From positions 62,001 to 126,000 of the IMG/VR virus record IMGVR_UViG_3300032331_003609: a DNA stretch of 64,000 bases; one strand, written 5' to 3'. The notes under the pieces are model-generated. The model had not been told where the DNA came from and searched no databases. It was given only the letters and a program-made list of their open reading frames with translations. Of the stretch, positions 1,770-63,323 are shown piece after piece. The stretch's first letter is position 1. Each line of letters begins with the position of its first letter. The position numbers and the translations under genes are program-made.

Positions 1770-4265
1770 ATGAACAATACTATAAATTTAGTTTATGATG
1801 ATTGGCCATTAGATCAGGATCATCCCAATCCTAATGGTGATAAATATTTTCCCGAACCTAATGCGTGGATGACAGGAGATGGTCCGATGGAAACCCTTAG
1901 ATATGATAATTATGTTCACAGAAGAATGGAGGACGTTGATAAGTATCAAGAGGAAAATTTCTTCTATGTTGTTTGGCATAGGCATTCTCTATACAATAGA
2001 TTTTTGCACTTTGACAGACTACCGATAGGTGATGACATGATTGGGCATTTTCAAAGAAAGCCTAATTTATTTCTTCTTTTGATAAATGATCAGGAAATCG
2101 AACCAAGAGAAACCATAAATAAACTTGATTTAGCTCTTGAAAGAAATAATATAGATCCAAGAAAAGTATTTTTAGTTAACAACAATTCAAGAAACTGGGA
2201 ATATAAAAGAGAACTTGGAAGTAACATCAATGTTCATAGCTGTAGAGCAATGCCCCTAGCTCTTGCAAAAACCCCCAAAAGTGTTTTCGTAGAGAATAAA
2301 GAGGGGTCATTTTTCATGTCACATAATCATTCTTTGAGAGAAAGCAGATCTGCTTTTGTTTGCCTTCTTAAGAAATATAATTTGATTGATGATTTTGATT
2401 GGTCCTATTTAAAACTCTGGAGAATGCCAACACAGGACTGGGAGACAATCTATAGAAGGATATTTAATGACTCTGATATGGAATTTTTAATGCCTGAGAT
2501 TGAATATTTCAATGCGTACGGGGTTAAGAAAAGCAATTATGAATCACATTTTCCATGGCTTGATGAAATAACCATGGATAGTCCTTCCTGGTGGGAAACA
2601 TTTAATCCTCAGCAGTACGAAAATACTTATTTCAATGTGACTGTAGAGACCCAATATTTCGGAAGGGATCTTCATATAACCGAAAAATCATTCAAGCCGT
2701 TTATACATTTGCAATTTCCTATGATACTAGCTTCTAGACATCATATTAAACATATGCGTGAATATTATGGCTACGATTTCTTTGATGATGTAATCAATCA
2801 TGATTATGATAACGTTAAGAGCGATAGAGATAGAATTTTTAGGTTTATAGAGGAATTAAAAAGGATTCAGGAAAATAAAGAATTCTTCATAGAATTTTAT
2901 AAGAATAATAAAGAAAGATTCTTAAAAAATCAAGAAATGGTTTATTCTTTTACTAATGAATATGATGCCAGCTATTTTTCTGCACTAACAAAATTTGATC
3001 ATCCAAAGGAAACGCTTAATTTAGTTTATGATAATTGGGACATGGAGACTAATCGTCCTATAAGGGGAAACTCTGAAGACCTATACACTAATACTTTTCA
3101 TATGAATTTGGATAGCGTTGTAGGATCACTTCAATTTGATAGGAGATTAATCAGAAGATTCAGACTAGAGGACGTTCCAAAAATGAAAAATCAAATATTT
3201 TTCTATTTCATAACTTTAATCCCCGGTATTTTATCCGAAAATATAAAAGCAGGGAAGCTTCCGATAAACAAAGATGCTATTAACACACTAAAGGAGTGTC
3301 CAAACTTTAATGTTATAATAATGAATGAACAGGAAGCTGAGAGGAAAGAAGCATTGGTACTTCTAGACAAATGGACAAGAGAAACAGGATTAGATCAGGG
3401 GCAAATATGGTTTTCCAATAACAATCCAAGGCTTGAAGAATTTAAGGAAGAAATAGGAACGGGAATAAACGTACATTCGACTGTTAGATTAGCTAACTTC
3501 ACTGCTAATTCTGTTATACATTCTGTAGGTAGAGTGGAATTTAAACCTAATAAAGATGGTGAATTTTTTATGTGTCATAACAGAAGACCAAGACCACATA
3601 GATATGGACTACTTTGCTTGCTTAAAAAGACAGGAATTTTAGAAGATGTTGATTGGTCCTTAGTTCAAGGATTTCAATTCAAGGATAATAAACACCCAGA
3701 AGCATTCTTTGGAGAAATATTCAACGGTGATGATATAGCAAATATGAGAGAAGAGATTGATTATTTTTCTAGCATCGAACAAAAGAAAAGTAGATATGAA
3801 GAGGAAAGAACATGGTTTGATGACAGAGATAATGAGAATAATGTTCCATGGAATGAAACATACGATAAGAATCAATTGGAAAATTCCTATTTTAATATCA
3901 CGACGGAAACGGAATTTGCTTCTGATTTAACACATATATCTGAGAAATCGTTTAAATCGTTTTGCGCAATGCAATTTCCATTAATACTTGCATCTGCACA
4001 TCATATTAGAGAAATTAAAAAGAAATATGATTTTGATTTCTTTGATGATGTTATCAATCATGATTATGATGAGGAGGAAAATCACAGAGATAGACTTTTT
4101 AAATTTGTTAAAGAGATAAAAAGAATAAATGACAATAAGGAATTCTTTATAGACTTTTATAAAAATAATAGGATGAGATTTGAAGAAAATTTAAGAAAAA
4201 TAGAAGAGAAGGTTAAGGATCAAACGGATTCAGATTTTCTTAAAAAAATATCAGGCATAATATGA
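1770..4265 (+). CDS. Tandem two-domain protein, putative GT-B glycosyltransferase-like (GT10-like ET...TEK motif)
   Basis: Internal duplication (NLVYDDW / NLVYDNW; YFNVTVET..ITEKSFK / YFNITTET..ISEKSFK). Confidence 0.55.
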   Translation: MNNTINLVYDDWPLDQDHPNPNGDKYFPEPNAWMTGDGPMETLRYDNYVHRRMEDVDKYQEENFFYVVWHRHSLYNRFLHFDRLPIGDDMIGHFQRKPNLFLLLINDQEIEPRETINKLDLALERNNIDPRKVFLVNNNSRNWEYKRELGSNINVHSCRAMPLALAKTPKSVFVENKEGSFFMSHNHSLRESRSAFVCLLKKYNLIDDFDWSYLKLWRMPTQDWETIYRRIFNDSDMEFLMPEIEYFNAYGVKKSNYESHFPWLDEITMDSPSWWETFNPQQYENTYFNVTVETQYFGRDLHITEKSFKPFIHLQFPMILASRHHIKHMREYYGYDFFDDVINHDYDNVKSDRDRIFRFIEELKRIQENKEFFIEFYKNNKERFLKNQEMVYSFTNEYDASYFSALTKFDHPKETLNLVYDNWDMETNRPIRGNSEDLYTNTFHMNLDSVVGSLQFDRRLIRRFRLEDVPKMKNQIFFYFITLIPGILSENIKAGKLPINKDAINTLKECPNFNVIIMNEQEAERKEALVLLDKWTRETGLDQGQIWFSNNNPRLEEFKEEIGTGINVHSTVRLANFTANSVIHSVGRVEFKPNKDGEFFMCHNRRPRPHRYGLLCLLKKTGILEDVDWSLVQGFQFKDNKHPEAFFGEIFNGDDIANMREEIDYFSSIEQKKSRYEEERTWFDDRDNENNVPWNETYDKNQLENSYFNITTETEFASDLTHISEKSFKSFCAMQFPLILASAHHIREIKKKYDFDFFDDVINHDYDEEENHRDRLFKFVKEIKRINDNKEFFIDFYKNNRMRFEENLRKIEEKVKDQTDSDFLKKISGII

Positions 4266-5959
4266 AAACAGTATTAATTACCGGATGTAACGGTTTAGTC
4301 GGAAGTTATCTTAGGGATATGTGTCTGAATAACGGATGGAAAGTTATTGGGGTCGATAGGAATTCGACGAAAAGAATCACAAAGAATTTAAATTACACAT
4401 TTAAAAAACTTGATCTTCTTTCAGAGATTAACATAATAAATTTATTTAAAGATTATAAATATGATGTTGTTTTTAATTGCTTTGGAATCAAAGGATCTCC
4501 GATAAAAGCAAAAGATAATCCGGCAGATTTTCTATATCCATCATTTAAAATAAACACCGAAATAATAAATCAGTGTTATCTGAATGATTCTTGGTTAGTT
4601 TTTGTCAGCTCTGTTGGTGTTTACAGTCCAGCAGAAAAATTCACGGAAGGAGATGTTTGGAAAACATTACCGTCAGAATCTGATTGGTTTCCTTCCTGGT
4701 CTAAAAGAATGGGAGAATTATTACTGGAATCATATAAAGTTCAGTATGGATACGATAAATGGACAATAGTAAGACCTGCAAATATTTTTGGGGAATACGA
4801 CGATTTTAGTGGAGGCGGAACCTTGATCTCAACGATGGTTAAAAAAGTATACGAAGCTAACGGAGAGATCGAAGCTTGGGGAGATGGTACTCCAATCAGA
4901 GATTTTATCTATGGAAAAGATGTCGCGTCTGCTTTAATTAAAGTGTATGAAAGAGGAGTAAGAGATATAGTAAATTGTGGATCTGGTATTGAGGTATCAA
5001 TAAAAGAGGTTATAGAAGAAATAATAAAAGCAAGCGGTAAACAAATATCTATCAATTGGAATTCATCCAAACCGAATGGGGATTTAAGAAGACTAATGGA
5101 CACAGATAAACAAGAGATACATGGTATAATGCCAGAAACTAAGTTTGAAGATGCTATTAAAAATGTATATGATTACTACATAAGATCTATTAAGGGGGAA
5201 GATCCAATAATACCAGCAAGCGATATATTAAAAGAAGGAGCATATTTGGGTAAAATATCAGATTTTTTAGAAGAAGACGAGCTAGAAAAATTCAAGGAAA
5301 TGATAAAATCAGTTAAAGAATATTCATCTGAAGATATAGAAAATAGACTTGTTTGTAGATATAATTATGACGATCTTGAAAATCCATATGATCATGCAAT
5401 TCCTCCAAGTAAAGTTCCGGAGAGGGATGCTTGGGTAAGGAAGAATAATTTTCATGTTTGGCAAAAGTGGTGGGAGTTTAAATACCCAGATCATGAATAT
5501 TTTGATAATATAGCAATTAAGATAATAAAGAATCTTTATCCCCAGGTATCGGAACATCTTGATAATCCTAGCAATGTAGATTCTAGGGGTAATATGGCAC
5601 TTTTTGAAGATGGACATTATATTGATATCCATAACGACGGAGCTAATGCTGGAAGATTATGTGTGATTATATTTTATTTATCTGACGAAAGCACATATCG
5701 TGACGGGGGTGGACAGCTTAAGATAATCACAAACTCAGGTAAAGAATGTTATATAGATCCATTTTTCGATAATTTTTGTGTTATGGATTTTGCTAGAAAT
5801 AATATAAAGCACGAAGTTAAGATGGTAAATAATGGATTTAAAAGGTACACGTATATAAATTTCATTAAATTCGAGGATAGCTCTCTTTTAGAAACTATCT
5901 TCCCGCCCATAGTAAAAGAGATTACTGAGACAAAAATAGAAAAGAAAAAAATAATATGA
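4262..5959 (+). CDS. NAD-dependent epimerase/reductase (GDP-fucose synthase-like) fused to a C-terminal 2OG-Fe(II) oxygenase domain
   Basis: TGCNGLVG, SSVGVY, WSKR, RPANIFG, WGDGTPIRDFIY; C-terminal HND...HEV...R..Y 2OG triad. Confidence 0.8.
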   Translation: MKTVLITGCNGLVGSYLRDMCLNNGWKVIGVDRNSTKRITKNLNYTFKKLDLLSEINIINLFKDYKYDVVFNCFGIKGSPIKAKDNPADFLYPSFKINTEIINQCYLNDSWLVFVSSVGVYSPAEKFTEGDVWKTLPSESDWFPSWSKRMGELLLESYKVQYGYDKWTIVRPANIFGEYDDFSGGGTLISTMVKKVYEANGEIEAWGDGTPIRDFIYGKDVASALIKVYERGVRDIVNCGSGIEVSIKEVIEEIIKASGKQISINWNSSKPNGDLRRLMDTDKQEIHGIMPETKFEDAIKNVYDYYIRSIKGEDPIIPASDILKEGAYLGKISDFLEEDELEKFKEMIKSVKEYSSEDIENRLVCRYNYDDLENPYDHAIPPSKVPERDAWVRKNNFHVWQKWWEFKYPDHEYFDNIAIKIIKNLYPQVSEHLDNPSNVDSRGNMALFEDGHYIDIHNDGANAGRLCVIIFYLSDESTYRDGGGQLKIITNSGKECYIDPFFDNFCVMDFARNNIKHEVKMVNNGFKRYTYINFIKFEDSSLLETIFPPIVKEITETKIEKKKII

Positions 5960-18041: not shown

Positions 18042-18466
18042 GGGTCCGTCTGGCTTTGATCCGGATGCGAATGGTAATACTACACGCAGAGGTATGGTAC
18101 TCATCCTCTTTAATCTCGGTACAAACCAATAAACGACAACACAATAGCTCGTCAAGAAATCGGTGCATCAATTATCAACATGGCGTTTGCGAACGCTCCT
18201 GTTGCTTTAGCAGCGTAATTCTTCCCCTGGTGACTTGGGTGGAACAGTAAGTCATAAACCGGTATAGCAATATGCCAAACAGTTTTATCCTTTTTTACAA
18301 AATGGATTGGTGGTTAACGTACTTAAATCGTACGGCCCTTACTGATCAGCTTAAAACGTAGATCAAAAAATACGGAGCAGAATTAAAAACTCAGTTCTAA
18401 GCGTGTGAGACGTTAGTGTTATGATTACTTTCGGAGACAGGGGTTCGAATCCCCTCGGATCCACCA
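18042..18466 (+). ncRNA. ssrA: tmRNA with 27-aa tag DNTIARQEIGASIINMAFANAPVALAA
   Basis: 5' GGGTCCG pairs with 3' CGGATCC-ACCA; T-arm GGGGTTCGAATCCCC; tag ORF 18135..18218 after AATAAAC, ending ALAA-TAA. Confidence 0.92.
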
Positions 18467-18472
18467 TTATAT

Positions 18473-18547
18473 CGTAGGGTAGAGCAGTGGTAGCTCGACG
18501 GGCTCATAACCCGTAGGTCGGAGGTTCGAATCCTTCCCCTGCAACCA
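18473..18547 (+). tRNA. tRNA-fMet (CAT), initiator
   Basis: C1:A72 mismatch, GGG/CCC anticodon stem, encoded CCA. Confidence 0.92.
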
Positions 18548-27332: not shown

Positions 27333-27370
27333 TATATTTGGATATAATTTAAATAGGGAAACGATATATA
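27333..27370 (+). promoter_or_regulatory. Promoter region of tRNA operon 1: TATATTTG (Bacteroidota -7 type) and GATATATA motif
   Basis: TATATTTG 27333-27340, GATATATA 27363-27370. Confidence 0.55.
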
Positions 27371-27377
27371 AATTAAA

Positions 27378-27470
27378 ATGAACAAAAGCTTCTACATATT
27401 GCCGCTTCACACTACGTCATCATCTTCATCAAGAAGACCGATAACTCATGTGGAGATACTGGGTAATTAG
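27378..27470 (+). CDS. Leader peptide 1 MNKSFYILPLHTTSSSSSRRPITHVEILGN (putative attenuator)
   Basis: 30-codon ORF between promoter motif and terminator; below ORF-track cutoff. Confidence 0.75.
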   Translation: MNKSFYILPLHTTSSSSSRRPITHVEILGN

Positions 27471-27495
27471 AAGAAACTTAAACTCATTTTCGTCT

Positions 27496-27533
27496 AAAAA
27501 GCCTAGATCCCTAATAAGATTTAGGCTTTTTTT
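27496..27533 (+). terminator. Intrinsic terminator/attenuator upstream of tRNA operon 1
   Basis: GCCTAGATC-loop-GATTTAGGC 9-bp stem plus T7. Confidence 0.85.
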
Positions 27534-27568
27534 ATTGGGTTCTTTGACATGGTGGGAAATTAAAAATT

Positions 27569-27656
27569 GGAGAGATGGCAGAGTTGGTCGATTGCGTCAG
27601 TCTTGAAAACTGAAGAACGGGAAACTGTTCCGTGGGTTCGAATCCTACTCTCTCCG
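27569..27656 (+). tRNA. tRNA-Ser (TGA)
   Basis: GGAGAGA/TCTCTCC, long variable arm, TTCGAAT, G73. Confidence 0.95.
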
Positions 27657-27699
27657 CAGGCGCAATTTCGTACCTTATACAGATATAGGGTATGAATAA

Positions 27700-27771
27700 G
27701 CATCTTAAGCATTGCAGGCGATGCGCCAGATTTGTAATCTGGATAACTCGGTTCGATTCCGGGCGGATGCT
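27700..27771 (+). tRNA. tRNA-Thr (TGT), atypical D-loop
   Basis: CCAGA-TTTGTAA-TCTGG anticodon arm, TTCGATT T-loop, GCATCT/GGATGC acceptor. Confidence 0.75.
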
Positions 27772-27864
27772 CAATACTAACGTAAAATAAGTACACTAAC
27801 ATAATATCTGTTAGAATACAAAAGTTCGGTAGCAAGGTTATTAACGCGTTTTATAAAGATATAG

Positions 27865-27985
27865 GCCGGTGTGGCGGAATGAATAATCTTGAATTCGAAT
27901 AGAGATTATTAGACGTCCCGTAATTCTAGAAAAGGTGGTGTATCCGAAATGGACATCGTGAAGGTAGTCAACCCTTCCACCGGCA
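27865..27985 (+). pseudogene. tRNA-Leu-like element with 30-nt D-loop hairpin insertion and no clear anticodon arm
   Basis: GCCGGTG/CACCGGC-A acceptor, TGGCGGAAT..AGACG, variable arm, GAAGG/CCTTC T-stem. Confidence 0.55.
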
Positions 27986-28094
27986 CCTTATTTAAGATAT
28001 TCTAAGAACAGCGTCGAGCCGGATTTTGCGTCGGTCTTAGATTAGATTTGTCCAATGGGAGAGCCGGCCGCGACCCCGGACAAATCACTATATT

Positions 28095-28168
28095 GGTTCT
28101 GTAGCTCAGTTGGATAGAGCGCCACCCTTCTAAGGTGGATGTCATTGGTTCGAATCCAATCGGGATCA
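28095..28168 (+). tRNA. tRNA-Arg (TCT)
   Basis: Canonical cloverleaf, CCACC-CTTCTAA-GGTGG. Confidence 0.93.
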
Positions 28169-28173
28169 CAATT

Positions 28174-28308
28174 AAGGTTGATTGGGGAATGGTTATGTCT
28201 ATAGCTCGAGCGTGGATACTGGCTGGCATAATCGGAGTTTGGAGGTATTCACCTAAGTAATGCCAATCGTAAAAGAGATCGTCCACTGAACCATCTTTCT
28301 CTTTCCTT
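28174..28308 (+). ncRNA. Candidate structured ncRNA inside the tRNA operon
   Basis: Nested helices AAGG/CCTT, ATGGTT/AACCAT, GTGGA/TCCAC, TGGCAT/ATGCCA, AGGT/ACCT. Confidence 0.5.
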
Positions 28309-28315
28309 AAAATAT

Positions 28316-28390
28316 GTTGGATGTAGCCTAATGGTAGGGCAAATGCTTGTGGCGCATTACGCGTGGGTTCGATCCCCATCATTCAACCCA
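28316..28390 (+). tRNA. tRNA-His (GTG)
   Basis: G-1:C73 8-bp acceptor, AATGC-TTGTGGC-GCATT, CCA. Confidence 0.93.
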
Positions 28391-28394
28391 ATAT

Positions 28395-28470
28395 CTAGAT
28401 GTAGAGGAGCCAAGTTTATCTCGCTGCTTTTGGAAAGCAGAGCACGCTGGGGCGGAGCCAGCCATTTAGA
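28395..28470 (+). tRNA. tRNA-Pro (TGG) with non-canonical D- and T-loops
   Basis: C1:G72, A73; CTGCT-TTTGGAA-AGCAG; T-arm GCTGG-GGCGGAG-CCAGC. Confidence 0.7.
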
Positions 28471-28538
28471 CAAAAAGATCAAAGAGACCGCTAAATCGAG
28501 TTAGTGAAAATCTACATTCTCTTTGGTCTTTTATATTA

Positions 28539-28612
28539 GGACTTGTAACTCAGTTGGTTAGAGTGCAACACTCATAATGTTGAAGCCCCTGGTTCGAGCC
28601 CAGGCTGGTCCA
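28539..28612 (+). tRNA. tRNA CAT, probably Ile2 (lysidine-modified, reads ATA); elongator Met not excluded
   Basis: Canonical cloverleaf CAACA-CTCATAA-TGTTG; G1:C72. Confidence 0.85.
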
Positions 28613-28698
28613 CGAAATAGTGTCTTGGTACGCTCTGAAGAAATTCAACGACAAGGTCTCGGTAAGCGAAACGCGTTCGATCTTGCCCAAAATATAAA

Positions 28699-28780
28699 GG
28701 CCCCCTGTTGTAATTGGTAGCCAATTCAGATTTAGGATCTGATGTCGCAAGACGTGTCGGTTCGAGTCCGACGGGGGTCA
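28699..28780 (+). tRNA. tRNA-Leu (TAG)
   Basis: TCAGA-TTTAGGA-TCTGA, variable arm TGTC-GCAA-GACG, TTCGAGT. Confidence 0.92.
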
Positions 28781-28852
28781 CAACAAGATTAGGTACAAAA
28801 AGATATTAAGAAACTAAACCTAAAAACGATATATAATATTCAACTAAACAAA

Positions 28853-28936
28853 ATGAGAAACCAGAATCAATATAATTATTACCCAATGCCTGAACAAGGT
28901 AATGAGGGAAATTATATGGACACAGATCTGGGATAA
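28853..28936 (+). CDS. Leader peptide 2 MRNQNQYNYYPMPEQGNEGNYMDTDLG (putative attenuator)
   Basis: 27-codon ORF after GATATATA (28828-28835) and before terminator. Confidence 0.75.
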   Translation: MRNQNQYNYYPMPEQGNEGNYMDTDLG

Positions 28937-28956
28937 CATTTTTTAAATATATTTTG

Positions 28957-28989
28957 AAAACCCAGATCTCAATAAGGTCTGGGTTTTTT
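28957..28989 (+). terminator. Intrinsic terminator/attenuator upstream of tRNA operon 2
   Basis: CCCAGATC-TCAATAA-GGTCTGGG stem plus T6. Confidence 0.85.
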
Positions 28990-28993
28990 ATTT

Positions 28994-29066
28994 GGGGATG
29001 TAGCTCCAGCGGTAGAGCGCGTGACTGTTAATCACTAGGTCGTAAGTTCGAATCTTACCATCCCCT
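28994..29066 (+). tRNA. tRNA-Asn (GTT)
   Basis: GGGGATG/CATCCCC, CTGTTAA loop, TTCGAAT. Confidence 0.93.
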
Positions 29067-29071
29067 CAGAT

Positions 29072-29145
29072 TGCAAGATAGTTCATTTGGTGAGAACACT
29101 GGATTCATAACCCAGAGGTGATGAGTTCGAATCTCATTCTTGCGA
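29072..29145 (+). tRNA. tRNA-Met (CAT), probably elongator
   Basis: TGCAAGA/TCTTGCG, TTCATAA loop, TTCGAAT. Confidence 0.85.
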
Positions 29146-29150
29146 CAAAT

Positions 29151-29222
29151 GCTCCCGTCGACTAGCGGTTAGGTCACCTCCCTTTCACGGAGGTAGCACG
29201 GATTCGAATTCCGTCGGGAGTA
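29151..29222 (+). tRNA. tRNA-Glu (TTC)
   Basis: CCTCC-CTTTCAC-GGAGG. Confidence 0.92.
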
Positions 29223-29227
29223 CAAAT

Positions 29228-29308
29228 TGGGATATCGCATAGTGGCAATTGCGGCTGACTGTAAATCAGCTCTCTTTGAGTTCGGCGGTTCGAGTCCGTC
29301 TATCCCAA
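29228..29308 (+). tRNA. tRNA-Tyr (GTA)
   Basis: GCTGA-CTGTAAA-TCAGC, long variable arm, TTCGAGT. Confidence 0.93.
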
Positions 29309-29314
29309 CAATAC

Positions 29315-29439
29315 GAGTTAACTGTCCAGTGAGGGAACTGGGGCCTGCCGGTAAATCAGGCGTCGCAAGATCAAGGTTAGTAAGTGATTCTGATACCTGC
29401 AGTACAACAGATCACGTGGTTCGAATCCCCCTTAACTCA
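29315..29439 (+). ncRNA. Enlarged tRNA-like element, anticodon ambiguous
   Basis: GAGTTAA/TTAACTC acceptor, GGTTCGAATCC T-loop, extra hairpins. Confidence 0.5.
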
Positions 29440-61827: not shown

Positions 61828-62400
61828 ATGGCAGGATTACCACATTATACATCTTCTAAGGCAGCGGTTAATAAATTTGAACCGATTTTTACTAATCAGT
61901 TCGAGGTATTGATCACTCCGCCTACTGCTGTAGTTCCCCCACAGGGAAGTCCTAATAACGGGAACATACTTTTAGAGCATGTGAAGAGTATAGAGGGATT
62001 AGCAGTTGATCAAAACCCTGGTGAGATCACTCAACAGTATAAGAATGCTAAAAGATATTATGCAGGAGCAAGACCACAAAGAACCGGTCTTGATCTTACT
62101 ATAAATTTTGAAGTTAACTTAGATGAAAACAATTCGATGTATGTTTTCAAAACTATGAGACAATGGGCAGATTTAATCTACAACCCATTAACAGGAGCAT
62201 TGGGTCTTAAAAAAGACTATACTGGAAATATACTTATCAGTGTATTTAATAAAGCAGGCGACGTACACAGAAGAATAAGTTGCAAAGATTGCTTTATTAT
62301 GACCCCATTATCACAAATGGATTTAAACTACACCAATACTAACTTGTTTGCTTTAAGAGTTACATGGGCAGTTGATTATTTCGATGACGTATTTATATAA
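61828..62400 (+). CDS. gp19: Tail tube protein
   Basis: Follows sheath; NQFEV..., WADLIYN, tube-like fold. Confidence 0.75.
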   Translation: MAGLPHYTSSKAAVNKFEPIFTNQFEVLITPPTAVVPPQGSPNNGNILLEHVKSIEGLAVDQNPGEITQQYKNAKRYYAGARPQRTGLDLTINFEVNLDENNSMYVFKTMRQWADLIYNPLTGALGLKKDYTGNILISVFNKAGDVHRRISCKDCFIMTPLSQMDLNYTNTNLFALRVTWAVDYFDDVFI

Positions 62401-62409
62401 AAATAAAAA

Positions 62410-62988
62410 ATGGCAGGATTACCACATTTTACTAGTGCAAAAGCGGCAGTAAGCCTTTACGAACCGGTATATTTAAACCAGTTCGAGGTTATTATTCAGC
62501 CACCTGCTGCGGTTTCTAACCCAGCTGGTACTGCGGGAAGAACCTTAATGGTAGAGAATGTAACACAGATTGGCGGATTAGCAGTGGATAAAACTCCAGC
62601 ACCAGTAATGCAAAACTATAAATTTGCAGGAAGAAGATACGCAGGTGCAGCAGTTGATGATACTGGTGTTAAGATCACAGTTAACTTTCAAACAAATTTA
62701 GACGATAATAACTCTAACTATGTCCACAAGACACTTAGACAATGGAGTGATTTAGTTTATAACCCATTAACGGGTGCTATGGGAATTAAATCTAACTATG
62801 CTGGCGGAACGTACATTCTAATTAGCATATTTAATAAACAAGGAGATGTTTTTAGAAGAATGAAATTCTTAAATTGCTTTCCGACTAAAGCTATAGATCC
62901 TATGCCACTTACATATGACAATGGAGCAAATATGTACACGATTGCTGCTGAATTTAGAGCAGATTATTTTGAAGATGTGTTCAATTAA
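62410..62988 (+). CDS. gp19: Tail tube protein paralogue
   Basis: MAGLPH start; W..LVYNP..G; FPTK.IDPM.L.Y. Confidence 0.75.
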   Translation: MAGLPHFTSAKAAVSLYEPVYLNQFEVIIQPPAAVSNPAGTAGRTLMVENVTQIGGLAVDKTPAPVMQNYKFAGRRYAGAAVDDTGVKITVNFQTNLDDNNSNYVHKTLRQWSDLVYNPLTGAMGIKSNYAGGTYILISIFNKQGDVFRRMKFLNCFPTKAIDPMPLTYDNGANMYTIAAEFRADYFEDVFN

Positions 62989-63009
62989 GAATTACTTAAA
63001 ATGATATAT

Positions 63010-63039
63010 AAAAGGCTTATCCTACCGATAAGCCTTTTT
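63010..63039. terminator. Intrinsic terminator
   Basis: AAAA-GGCTTATC/GATAAGCC-TTTTT. Confidence 0.8.
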
Positions 63040-63041
63040 AT

Positions 63042-63323
63042 TTGCACATCATTTTAAAAAGGAATAGAACTCCAACATGGACGACCCCGGTGATAGAAAA
63101 AACAATCAAAAAATACAAAGAAAAAGAAAAAAGACTAGTCTTTTACAAAGATACGTCCCTAATGTTAGCTATGTTCTTTCTCCCATTTGGCTACGACGCA
63201 TTGTTCAAGTTAATAATGGACATGAGTGGTTCATATTGGGTAGCAGATATTGTTTTTTATTCAATTTCAGGTTGCTTCTGGTTGTCGTATATCTTACTTA
63301 CGAAACGTTTAAGTAGAAAATAG
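63042..63323 (+). CDS. Small membrane protein, hypothetical
   Basis: Two TM-like segments; start uncertain. Confidence 0.5.
   Translation: MHIILKRNRTPTWTTPVIEKTIKKYKEKEKRLVFYKDTSLMLAMFFLPFGYDALFKLIMDMSGSYWVADIVFYSISGCFWLSYILLTKRLSRK

Follow-up and report, generated by a model that had tools for sequence, protein, structure and literature searches.

Putative leader-peptide attenuators preceding two tRNA gene clusters in a large uncultured phage

Each of two consecutive tRNA gene clusters in a large uncultured phage was found to be preceded by a short reading frame rich in the codons that its own tRNAs read and by an intrinsic transcription terminator, an arrangement that looks like a trp/his-type attenuator applied to tRNA genes. 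No description of such an arrangement was found in full-text literature searches, although their coverage was incomplete. The units lie in a 64,000-nucleotide window (positions 62,001 to 126,000) of the 244,850-bp contig IMG/VR UViG_3300032331_003609, and the large terminase, tail sheath, and tail fibre genes are also in the window. On computational evidence alone, the likely interpretation is that ribosome-mediated attenuation gives feedback control of phage tRNA supply.

An earlier note had described the first unit from the sequence alone and proposed that it is a leader-peptide attenuator whose codons mirror the downstream tRNA operon. All of the listed elements of that unit were confirmed, with the single exception of a "Leu-like" tRNA, and a second unit with the same layout was found directly downstream. 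The features of the two units are as follows.

27343..27348 (+): TATAAT hexamer 14 nt upstream of GATATATA, a possible second (host-type) promoter element
27363..27370 (+): GATATATA, promoter-like motif of unit 1, resembling the T4 late promoter TATAAATA
27378..27470 (+): leader ORF 1, 30 codons plus stop, MNKSFYILPLHTTSSSSSRRPITHVEILGN
27396..27449 (+): putative regulatory codons 7 to 24 of leader 1
27416..27445 (+): conserved predicted hairpin inside leader 1 (core TCTTC/GAAGA, 27423-27437), a candidate 1:2 or pause hairpin
27453..27464 (+): putative antiterminator 5' strand of unit 1, GAGATACTGGGT, leader codons 26 to 29, complementary to 27501-27511
27501..27533 (+): intrinsic terminator 1, a 9-bp stem with an 8-nt loop (GCCTAGATC / CCTAATAA / GATTTAGGC, 27501-27526) and T7 (27527-27533)
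27569..27657 (+): tRNA-Ser(tga), Rfam 58.7 bits
27700..27772 (+): tRNA-Thr(tgt), 41.5 bits
27865..27985 (+): conserved tRNA-like RNA with no callable anticodon
28095..28169 (+): tRNA-Arg(tct), 67.4 bits
28317..28390 (+): tRNA-His(gtg)
28395..28471 (+): tRNA-Pro(tgg), with an atypical T loop
28539..28613 (+): tRNA with anticodon CAT (Ile2 or Met)
28699..28781 (+): tRNA-Leu(tag)
28828..28835 (+): GATATATA, promoter-like motif of unit 2
28853..28936 (+): leader ORF 2, 27 codons plus stop, MRNQNQYNYYPMPEQGNEGNYMDTDLG
28924..28932 (+): putative antiterminator 5' strand of unit 2, AGATCTGGG, the last leader codons, a perfect complement of 28961-28969
28961..28989 (+): intrinsic terminator 2, CCCAGATCT / CAATA / AGGTCTGGG, then T6
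28994..29309 (+): tRNA array 2, Asn(gtt), CAT, Glu(ttc), and Tyr(gta)
29315..29439 (+): second conserved tRNA-like RNA without a call

The 11 tRNA genes at 27569-29309 were called by ARAGORN and, except for tRNA-Pro(tgg), by Rfam; tRNA-Pro(tgg) was below the Rfam threshold, whereas two loci from related phages, L003 and L049, carry a canonical Pro(tgg). The element at 27865-27985, which the earlier note had listed as a Leu-like tRNA, was called a tRNA by neither program; it has six homologues, and its consensus fold contains a 7-bp acceptor stem and a T arm. In relatives, a genuine tRNA-Leu(taa) sits next to it, and this gene is absent from the window. Similarly, the second tRNA-like RNA is followed in L003 by tRNA-Gln and tRNA-Asp, which are missing here. 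The tRNA-Thr gene is absent from another related locus, L002, and differs in sequence from the Thr gene of L003 and L049. The identity of the CAT tRNAs was not resolved by BLAST against E. coli, in which the array 1 gene hit both tRNA-Ile and tRNA-Met and the array 2 gene hit nothing; leader 1, with three ATA codons and no internal ATG, predicts Ile2 for array 1.

The GATATATA motif had 13 copies in the window, all of which were intergenic, co-oriented with the next gene, and 5 to 31 nt before its ATG, including that of the tail sheath gene, and the motif was conserved in all relatives. The upstream hexamer is TATAAT in L002 and L049 and TACAAT in L003. The leader ORFs begin 7 and 17 nt after GATATATA and have A-rich starts lacking a Shine-Dalgarno motif, which are typical of this phage, in that only 2 of 51 phage genes have such a motif. 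The terminator hairpins were not listed by a terminator scan, probably because the flanking A run lets the stem extend into the T run and leaves too few T residues after it, but both were verified by folding, with stem energies of -11.0 kcal/mol for unit 1 (-16.3 with the A5/T pairs) and -12.7 kcal/mol for unit 2. Terminator 1 was conserved in all relatives. The stop-to-T-run spacing was 63 nt in unit 1 and 53 nt in unit 2. Notably, tRNA-Asn starts only 4 nt after the T run of unit 2, leaving no room for another promoter, so that array 2 can only be transcribed by reading through the terminator.

Each leader was enriched in the amino acids of its own array and not of the other array. Residues 7 to 24 of leader 1 are all I, L, P, H, T, S, or R, the set of the downstream tRNAs, and include four TCA, two AGA, and three ATA codons as well as CAC/CAT, as the earlier note had stated. 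This run of 18 in-set residues exceeds the maximum of 13 seen in about 20,000 coding codons. In total, 15 of 29 codons of leader 1 were strictly decodable by its array (background, 0.18; binomial, 4e-5), as were 13 of 26 codons of leader 2 (background, 0.19; binomial, 4e-4), and only 38 of 18,386 coding windows of the phage did as well as either leader. The exact amino-acid-set test gave 0.0012 for the own array versus 0.56 for the other array for leader 1 and 0.026 versus 0.87 for leader 2; for leader 2 of relatives, it gave 0.0027 (L003), 0.0013 (L054), and 0.0094 (L049). In addition, the phage strongly prefers the A-ending codons that these tRNAs read (AGA, 81% of Arg; ATA, 49% of Ile; ACA, 47% of Thr; TTA, 42% of Leu).

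In both units, the last leader codons were complementary to the 5' arm of the terminator, with 9 of 9 bases paired in unit 2 and 9 to 11 pairs with one bulge and one mismatch in unit 1. A ribosome at the stop codon would cover this strand, whereas a ribosome stalled in mid-leader would leave it free. In nascent-transcript folds, the terminator arm was sequestered when a ribosome was placed at mid-leader codons (codon 15 or 20 in unit 1) and released when it was placed at the stop codon, in all 7 unit 1 variants and all 4 unit 2 variants. At equilibrium, however, RNAfold always preferred the terminator (P > 0.93 for every ribosome position), so the switch would have to be kinetic, as in classical attenuators. 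The pairing was kept in 92% of cells in unit 1 (7 sequences), against 16 to 47% in slid registers, and in 94% of cells in unit 2, against 6 to 50%, but no base pair showed a change on both sides.

Searches for relatives found only one lineage, comprising 4 to 5 IMG/VR contigs and about 8 metagenome contigs; one locus (L048) was cut off at the contig end, and four others (L058 and L062 to L064) were chance matches in unrelated GC-rich DNA. The frame and stop position of leader 1 were kept without indels in seven related metagenomic phages whose neighbouring protein is only 69 to 85% identical, and the variable columns were biased to the third codon position (2/6/12). Every nonsynonymous change in codons 7 to 24 (T>S, S>L twice, and H>P) stayed inside the amino-acid set. 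However, the most conserved 20-mer of leader 1 is also a hairpin (TCTTC/GAAGA), so RNA structure rather than codon identity could explain part of its conservation and the Ser/Arg codons. The frame of leader 2 was kept in 4 homologues, including those in L003, L049, and L054, with one extra in-frame codon in L049. Interestingly, there were hints of covariation between leader and array: TTA TTA was present in all 5 variants with tRNA-Leu(taa) and replaced by TCA TCA in the 2 without it, TGC was present only in L049, the only array with tRNA-Cys(gca), and the Q and D codons were explained by tRNA-Gln and tRNA-Asp in L003 and L054. Each of these hints may be a single evolutionary event, however, and the relatives are close (mean column identity, 91 to 94%). 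Furthermore, the match was imperfect in several places: L002 lacks tRNA-Thr but keeps the Thr codons, L049 and L054 lack the CAT tRNA in array 2 but keep the ATG codons, the window lacks Gln and Asp tRNAs at this locus but keeps the Q and D codons, and L049 and another related locus, L053, have AGC without tRNA-Ser(gct). The 42 loci found with the 388-amino-acid neighbouring protein carried no tRNA arrays. No module of a small ORF, terminator, and tRNAs with matched composition was found in 8 other phage tRNA regions, those of two huge phages (LR756501 and LR756502), crAss cr7_1, Acinetobacter phiAbaA1, Cronobacter S13 and GAP32, Aeromonas avDM5, and mycobacteriophage D29.

Taken together, the findings support the interpretation in the earlier note, and they probably reflect two tandem ribosome-mediated transcription attenuators, each controlling one phage tRNA operon. 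In this model, a phage promoter (GATATATA, probably late) starts a transcript at or a few bases before the AUG of a leader whose middle is packed with codons for Ser, Thr, Leu, Arg, His, Pro, and Ile(ATA) in unit 1 and for Asn, Tyr, Glu, Met, and, in relatives, Gln, Asp, or Cys in unit 2, and whose last 3 to 4 codons are complementary to the 5' arm of a terminator 25 to 30 nt beyond the stop codon. It is inferred that, if the cognate charged tRNAs are plentiful, the ribosome quickly reaches the stop codon and covers that strand, the terminator forms, and RNA polymerase stops before the tRNA genes. If decoding of any of these codons is slow, possibly because of the heavy use of A-ending codons by the phage, host tRNA loss or cleavage, or poor charging, the ribosome would stall in mid-leader, the free 3' end of the leader would sequester the terminator arm, and polymerase would read on into the array. 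The tRNAs produced would relieve the stall, giving negative feedback that matches tRNA supply to decoding demand. Leader translation, termination at the T runs, the response of readthrough to tRNA supply, and the trigger proposed in the earlier note (starvation or an anticodon nuclease) are all inferred.

Among the alternatives, all considered unlikely, the best surviving is that the hairpins are constitutive, leaky terminators or insulators that simply end short late transcripts or upstream operons, that the ORFs are incidental or encode small peptides, that the tRNAs are made by unregulated readthrough or from unrecognised promoters, and that the codon resemblance is a by-product of composition. 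This possibility is consistent with the equilibrium folds, with the imperfect leader/array match in several relatives, and with a similar pair of GATATATA and hairpin with no ORF in between at 63003-63045. Against it are the match of each of two independent units to its own array and not the other, the absence of room for a promoter before tRNA-Asn, and the complementarity of each leader end to the terminator arm in both units and in all relatives; in addition, low-complexity peptides such as SSSSSRR and NQNQYNYY are unlikely to be functional proteins. Slightly less likely still is an untranslated structured leader RNA, such as an sRNA, an RNase processing or stability element, or a protein- or tRNA-binding riboregulator, with the open frame being an accident of close relatedness. 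Both leaders contain extended conserved hairpins, the closeness of the relatives makes an intact frame weak evidence on its own, and variation in leader 2 was not biased to the third position (3/5/4). However, this reading does not explain the match of composition to tRNA set, and the third-position bias in leader 1, the change of its stop codon from TAG to TAA in place, the 3-nt in-frame insertion in L049, the gene-like start context, and the absence of a T-box or other Rfam riboregulator hit, apart from a subthreshold leader-type hit described below, argue against it. The least likely alternative, a translation-dependent attenuator sensing general translation capacity (such as ribosome availability or transcription-translation coupling late in infection), draws on the facts that many leader codons (AGA, ATA, TCA, AAT, TAT, GAA, and CAA) are the commonest synonymous choices of the phage and that synonymous resampling gave only p = 0.04 for leader 1 and no signal for leader 2, but the signal is at the amino-acid level, the two leaders use nearly disjoint sets that track the two arrays, which a general sensor would not need, and the TTA/Leu(taa) and TGC/Cys coincidences also argue against it.

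A further reading, judged only slightly more likely than not, is that the units are codon-demand sensors, which would be the first leader-peptide attenuators known to control RNA genes, each testing in real time whether the ribosome can decode a panel of 5 to 7 codon families and switching on the matching tRNA operon when it cannot. Such sensors would give homeostatic control of viral tRNA supply and could also act as an inducible counter-defence when the host degrades its own tRNAs or cleaves them with anticodon nucleases; the unit 2 set (Tyr, Asn, Asp, Glu, and Gln) overlaps classic anticodon-nuclease targets. Current debate concerns why phages carry tRNA genes, whether for codon supplementation, compensation for host tRNA decay, or escape from tRNA-cleaving defences, and a translated sensor of this kind would show that at least one phage lineage measures decoding capacity and adjusts tRNA production to it. 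It would extend classical attenuation from amino-acid metabolism to the decoding machinery itself and from cells to viruses, and the compact module, about 160 nt reporting the availability of chosen tRNAs, would be useful as a natural design for tRNA or codon biosensors.

As in the tRNA arrays of T4, T5, and jumbo phages, the phage carries tRNAs for codons that it uses heavily, and the tRNA classes overlap known targets of tRNA-cleaving defences such as PARIS AriB and Retron-Eco7: viruses encode tRNAs that overcome tRNA cleavage (PMC12409363), and tRNA-Tyr is degraded by Retron-Eco7 (PMC12673091). No account of regulation of such arrays by a codon-matched leader peptide was found in the literature searched. 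T-box riboswitches also sense the state of a specific tRNA through a leader RNA that switches between terminator and antiterminator, but a T-box binds uncharged tRNA directly and needs no translation, a translated ORF is central to the present model, and no T-box match was found at the gathering threshold or at E <= 1. In the pheM-pheST attenuator, a leader peptide likewise appears to control a component of the decoding machinery, with low charged tRNA raising expression of something that restores charged tRNA (related attenuators are surveyed in PMC1262725), but the target there is a protein, phenylalanyl-tRNA synthetase, for one amino acid, whereas here it is the tRNA genes themselves, for many amino acids. 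The multivalent leader-peptide attenuators of amino-acid operons of Proteobacteria (thrL and ilvL/ivbL, also trpL, hisL, leuL, and pheL) share the order of promoter, 14- to 32-codon leader with clustered regulatory codons, mutually exclusive antiterminator and terminator, and T run, and several amino acids are sensed at once in thr (Thr and Ile) and ilv (Ile, Val, and Leu). Unit 2 gave a weak full-length match to the Rfam family Thr_leader (RF00506; 23.2 bits against a gathering score of 55; E = 0.19) and unit 1 gave none, so the element belongs to no Rfam leader family. It differs from these attenuators in being phage-encoded, behind a phage-type promoter, and without a Shine-Dalgarno motif, in that seven amino acids would be sensed in one leader, and in that the controlled genes are tRNAs rather than biosynthetic enzymes, so that the product would act directly on the sensor, giving decoding feedback rather than metabolite feedback.

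The stretch examined is part of the 244,850-bp IMG/VR contig UViG_3300032331_003609, has 35% G+C, and carries a large terminase gene, a tail sheath gene, and collagen-like tail fibre genes. The terminase was closest (31-40% amino-acid identity) to those of uncultured huge phages, Sphingomonas phage PAU, Tenacibaculum phages PTm1/PTm5, and Flavobacterium phage MaF61, and no phage in INPHARED matched the region except through single tRNAs. All elements of the first unit, which the earlier note had described as a leader-peptide attenuator preceding a tRNA operon, were confirmed at the stated coordinates, except that the Leu-like element was not callable as a tRNA, and a second unit of the same design was found directly after tRNA-Leu(tag). 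The elements of the two units were as follows:

27363-27370: GATATATA, the promoter-like motif of unit 1
27378-27470: leader ORF 1, encoding MNKSFYILPLHTTSSSSSRRPITHVEILGN
27501-27533: terminator 1, the hairpin GCCTAGATC / CCTAATAA / GATTTAGGC followed by T7
Array 1: tRNAs Ser-tga, Thr-tgt, Arg-tct, His-gtg, Pro-tgg, CAT, and Leu-tag
27865-27985: conserved tRNA-like RNA within array 1
28828: GATATATA, the promoter-like motif of unit 2
28853-28936: leader ORF 2, encoding MRNQNQYNYYPMPEQGNEGNYMDTDLG
28961-28989: terminator 2, CCCAGATCT / CAATA / AGGTCTGGG followed by T6
28994-29309: array 2, tRNAs Asn-gtt, CAT, Glu-ttc, and Tyr-gta
29315-29439: second conserved tRNA-like RNA

The consensus terminator scan missed the hairpin of unit 1, probably because the flanking A5 run lets the stem extend into the T run; folding gave -11.0 kcal/mol for the stem alone. 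In unit 2, the tRNAs begin 4 nt after the T run, leaving no room for a promoter between terminator and tRNA, and the array can therefore be transcribed only by readthrough. The element at 27865-27985, which the earlier note had listed as a Leu-like tRNA, was called as a tRNA by neither ARAGORN nor Rfam. This RNA and the one at 29315-29439 (homologues, for example, at 3865-3983 and 5681-5805 of L003, one of the related metagenomic phages considered below) are conserved RNAs of about 120-125 nt, each with a 7-bp acceptor-like stem and a T-arm-like hairpin with long inserts. Neither was called by ARAGORN, with or without introns, or by Rfam, and they could be degenerate or interrupted tRNAs or another kind of RNA.

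The motif GATATATA occurred 13 times in the window, against 6.6 expected. All 13 copies were intergenic, pointed towards the next gene, and lay 5-31 nt before its ATG, and one of these genes was the tail sheath gene. The motif appears to resemble the T4 late promoter TATAAATA. Several copies (for example, those at 1757, 41095-, 43875-, and 53585) ended only 5-7 nt before the ATG, and where the spacing is 5-9 nt, as in unit 1, the mRNA would be leaderless or nearly so. Only 2 of 51 genes had a Shine-Dalgarno (SD) motif; the A-rich, SD-less starts of the two leaders are therefore normal for this phage and would fit a Bacteroidota-type host, although this host assignment is an inference. In addition, at 63003-63045, GATATATA was followed 3 nt later by a terminator-like hairpin (GGCTTATC / CTACC / GATAAGCC, then T5) with no ORF in between. 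This element lies just after the stop of gene 62410-62988 and before an ATG at 63078, and it may be a gene-end terminator overlapping the next promoter or another regulatory arrangement.

Under strict wobble rules, 15 of 29 codons of leader 1 were read by array 1 (background, 0.18; binomial probability, 4e-5), and 13 of 26 codons of leader 2 were read by array 2 (background, 0.19; binomial probability, 4e-4). Among about 18,400 same-length windows of the phage's coding sequence, 38 did as well as either leader; most coding low-complexity sequence here is collagen-like or PT-rich. Notably, the run of 18 consecutive in-set residues exceeded the longest run, 13, in about 20,000 coding codons. An exact test that needs no background model was also run, in which the amino-acid sets covering the leader at least as well were counted among all sets of the same size; for both leaders of the window, the match was to the leader's own array and not to the other.

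Exact amino-acid-set test of leaders against tRNA arrays in the window and in the related phages L003, L054, and L049 (-, no value)
Leader; own array; other array
Window leader 1; 0.0012; 0.56
Window leader 2; 0.026; 0.87
L003 leader 1; 0.0046; -
L003 leader 2; 0.0027; -
L054 leader 2; 0.0013; -
L049 leader 2; 0.0094; -

Most of the signal was at the amino-acid level; synonymous resampling added only P = 0.04 for leader 1 and nothing for leader 2. The tRNAs read the A-ending codons that the phage prefers, with AGA constituting 81% of Arg codons, ATA 49% of Ile codons, ACA 47% of Thr codons, and TTA 42% of Leu codons.

The last codons of leader 2 contain AGATCTGGG (28924-28932), which is the perfect complement of the terminator's 5' arm, CCCAGATCT. 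In unit 1, 27453-27464 pairs with 27501-27511 through 9-11 pairs and one bulge, and the bulged base is the wobble base of an Ile codon, which is ATA, ATC, or ATT in different relatives. At equilibrium the terminator always won (P > 0.93); the same is true of classical attenuators, whose decision is kinetic. In folds of the nascent transcript (up to the terminator loop), the 5' arm was sequestered by the end of the leader when a 30-nt ribosome footprint was placed at codons 6-21 (unit 1) or 1-20 (unit 2), and it was released when the ribosome sat at the last codons or the stop. The same behaviour was predicted for all 7 unit-1 variants and all 4 unit-2 variants. Both leaders also contain an internal hairpin (27416-27445 in unit 1), which may be the counterpart of the 1:2 or pause hairpin. 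The distance from the stop codon to the T run is 63 nt in unit 1 and 53 nt in unit 2.

Pattern and protein searches found one lineage only, consisting of the related phages L002 (same as L061), L003 (same as L059), L049 (same as L055), L053, L054 (same as L056 and L060), and L057, whose neighbouring 535-aa protein is 69-85% identical to that of the window. Leader 1 had no indel in 7 distinct sequences, its stop codon stayed in place while changing from TAG to TAA, and its variable columns fell 2/6/12 by codon position. All nonsynonymous changes within codons 7-24 stayed inside the tRNA set (T>S, S>L twice, and H>P), and leader 2 of L049 carried one extra codon, in frame. Antiterminator pairs were standard in 92% (unit 1) and 94% (unit 2) of cells, against 6-50% for slid registers; three one-sided changes kept the pairing, but no pair showed a change on both sides.

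Interestingly, the arrays differed between phages, and the leaders partly followed. The five variants with tRNA-Leu(taa) had TTA TTA, whereas the two without it (the window and L002) had TCA TCA at the same positions; L049 was the only phage whose array 2 starts with tRNA-Cys(gca) and the only one with a TGC codon; and tRNA-Gln and tRNA-Asp in L003 and L054 accounted for the Q and D codons of leader 2. However, the match was not perfect, as L002 lacks tRNA-Thr, L049 and L054 lack the CAT tRNA of array 2, and the window lacks Gln and Asp tRNAs at this locus, and in all these cases the corresponding codons persist; each hint of covariation may also be a single evolutionary event. Furthermore, tRNA-Pro(tgg) of the window (28395-28471) and of L002 had a noncanonical T loop (GGCGGAG) and fell below the Rfam tRNA threshold, whereas L003 and L049 carry a canonical Pro(tgg) at the same place, and the window's tRNA-Thr(tgt) (27700-27772) differed in sequence from the Thr gene of L003/L049. 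The arrays turn over while the leader stays. The spacers between tRNAs (70-150 nt; 28170-28316, 28472-28538, and 28614-28698) were conserved in L002 and partly in L049 and L003, far more than expected for neutral spacers, and may hold further small RNAs or processing signals.

Taken together, the anatomy, the composition match, the complementarity, and the conservation support, in silico, the interpretation offered in the earlier note, and the most likely reading, held with fairly good confidence, is a pair of ribosome-mediated attenuators that gate two tRNA operons; in this reading, translation of the leaders, termination at the hairpins, switching of the fold by stalling, and the natural cause of stalling are all inferred. 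The rival explanations are a constitutive leaky terminator with an incidental ORF, an untranslated structured leader, and a general translation-capacity sensor. Each of these fails to explain at least one of three facts, namely, that the two leaders use nearly disjoint amino-acid sets that track their own arrays, that the end of each ORF is the antiterminator strand, and that the frame is kept, with third-position and in-frame changes. Notably, at 18042-18547 the phage also encodes a tmRNA (tag peptide, ARQEIGASIINMAFANAPVALAA; Rfam, 80 bits), followed directly by a tRNA with anticodon CAT, with AATATATAA lying about 30 nt upstream, and a phage that rescues stalled ribosomes and also appears to sense stalling is a notable combination.

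Leader-peptide control of tRNA genes in phages or cells was not found in full-text literature searches, although these did not cover most subscription journals and the absence is therefore not proof. A small survey of 8 other phage tRNA regions found no analogue, and the element is for now known from one lineage only. Unrelated phages repeatedly cluster a tRNA set similar to that at 28994-29309, namely, Asn, Gln, Glu, and Tyr, plus Trp in mycobacteriophage D29 (4209-4671), but in D29 the array follows a tail gene by 9 nt, with no leader or terminator. The element is not a member of any Rfam leader family, the best hit being Thr_leader at 23 bits against a gathering score of 55, and it is not a T-box. 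In its design, it works like the multivalent thr and ilv leaders and like pheM-pheST.
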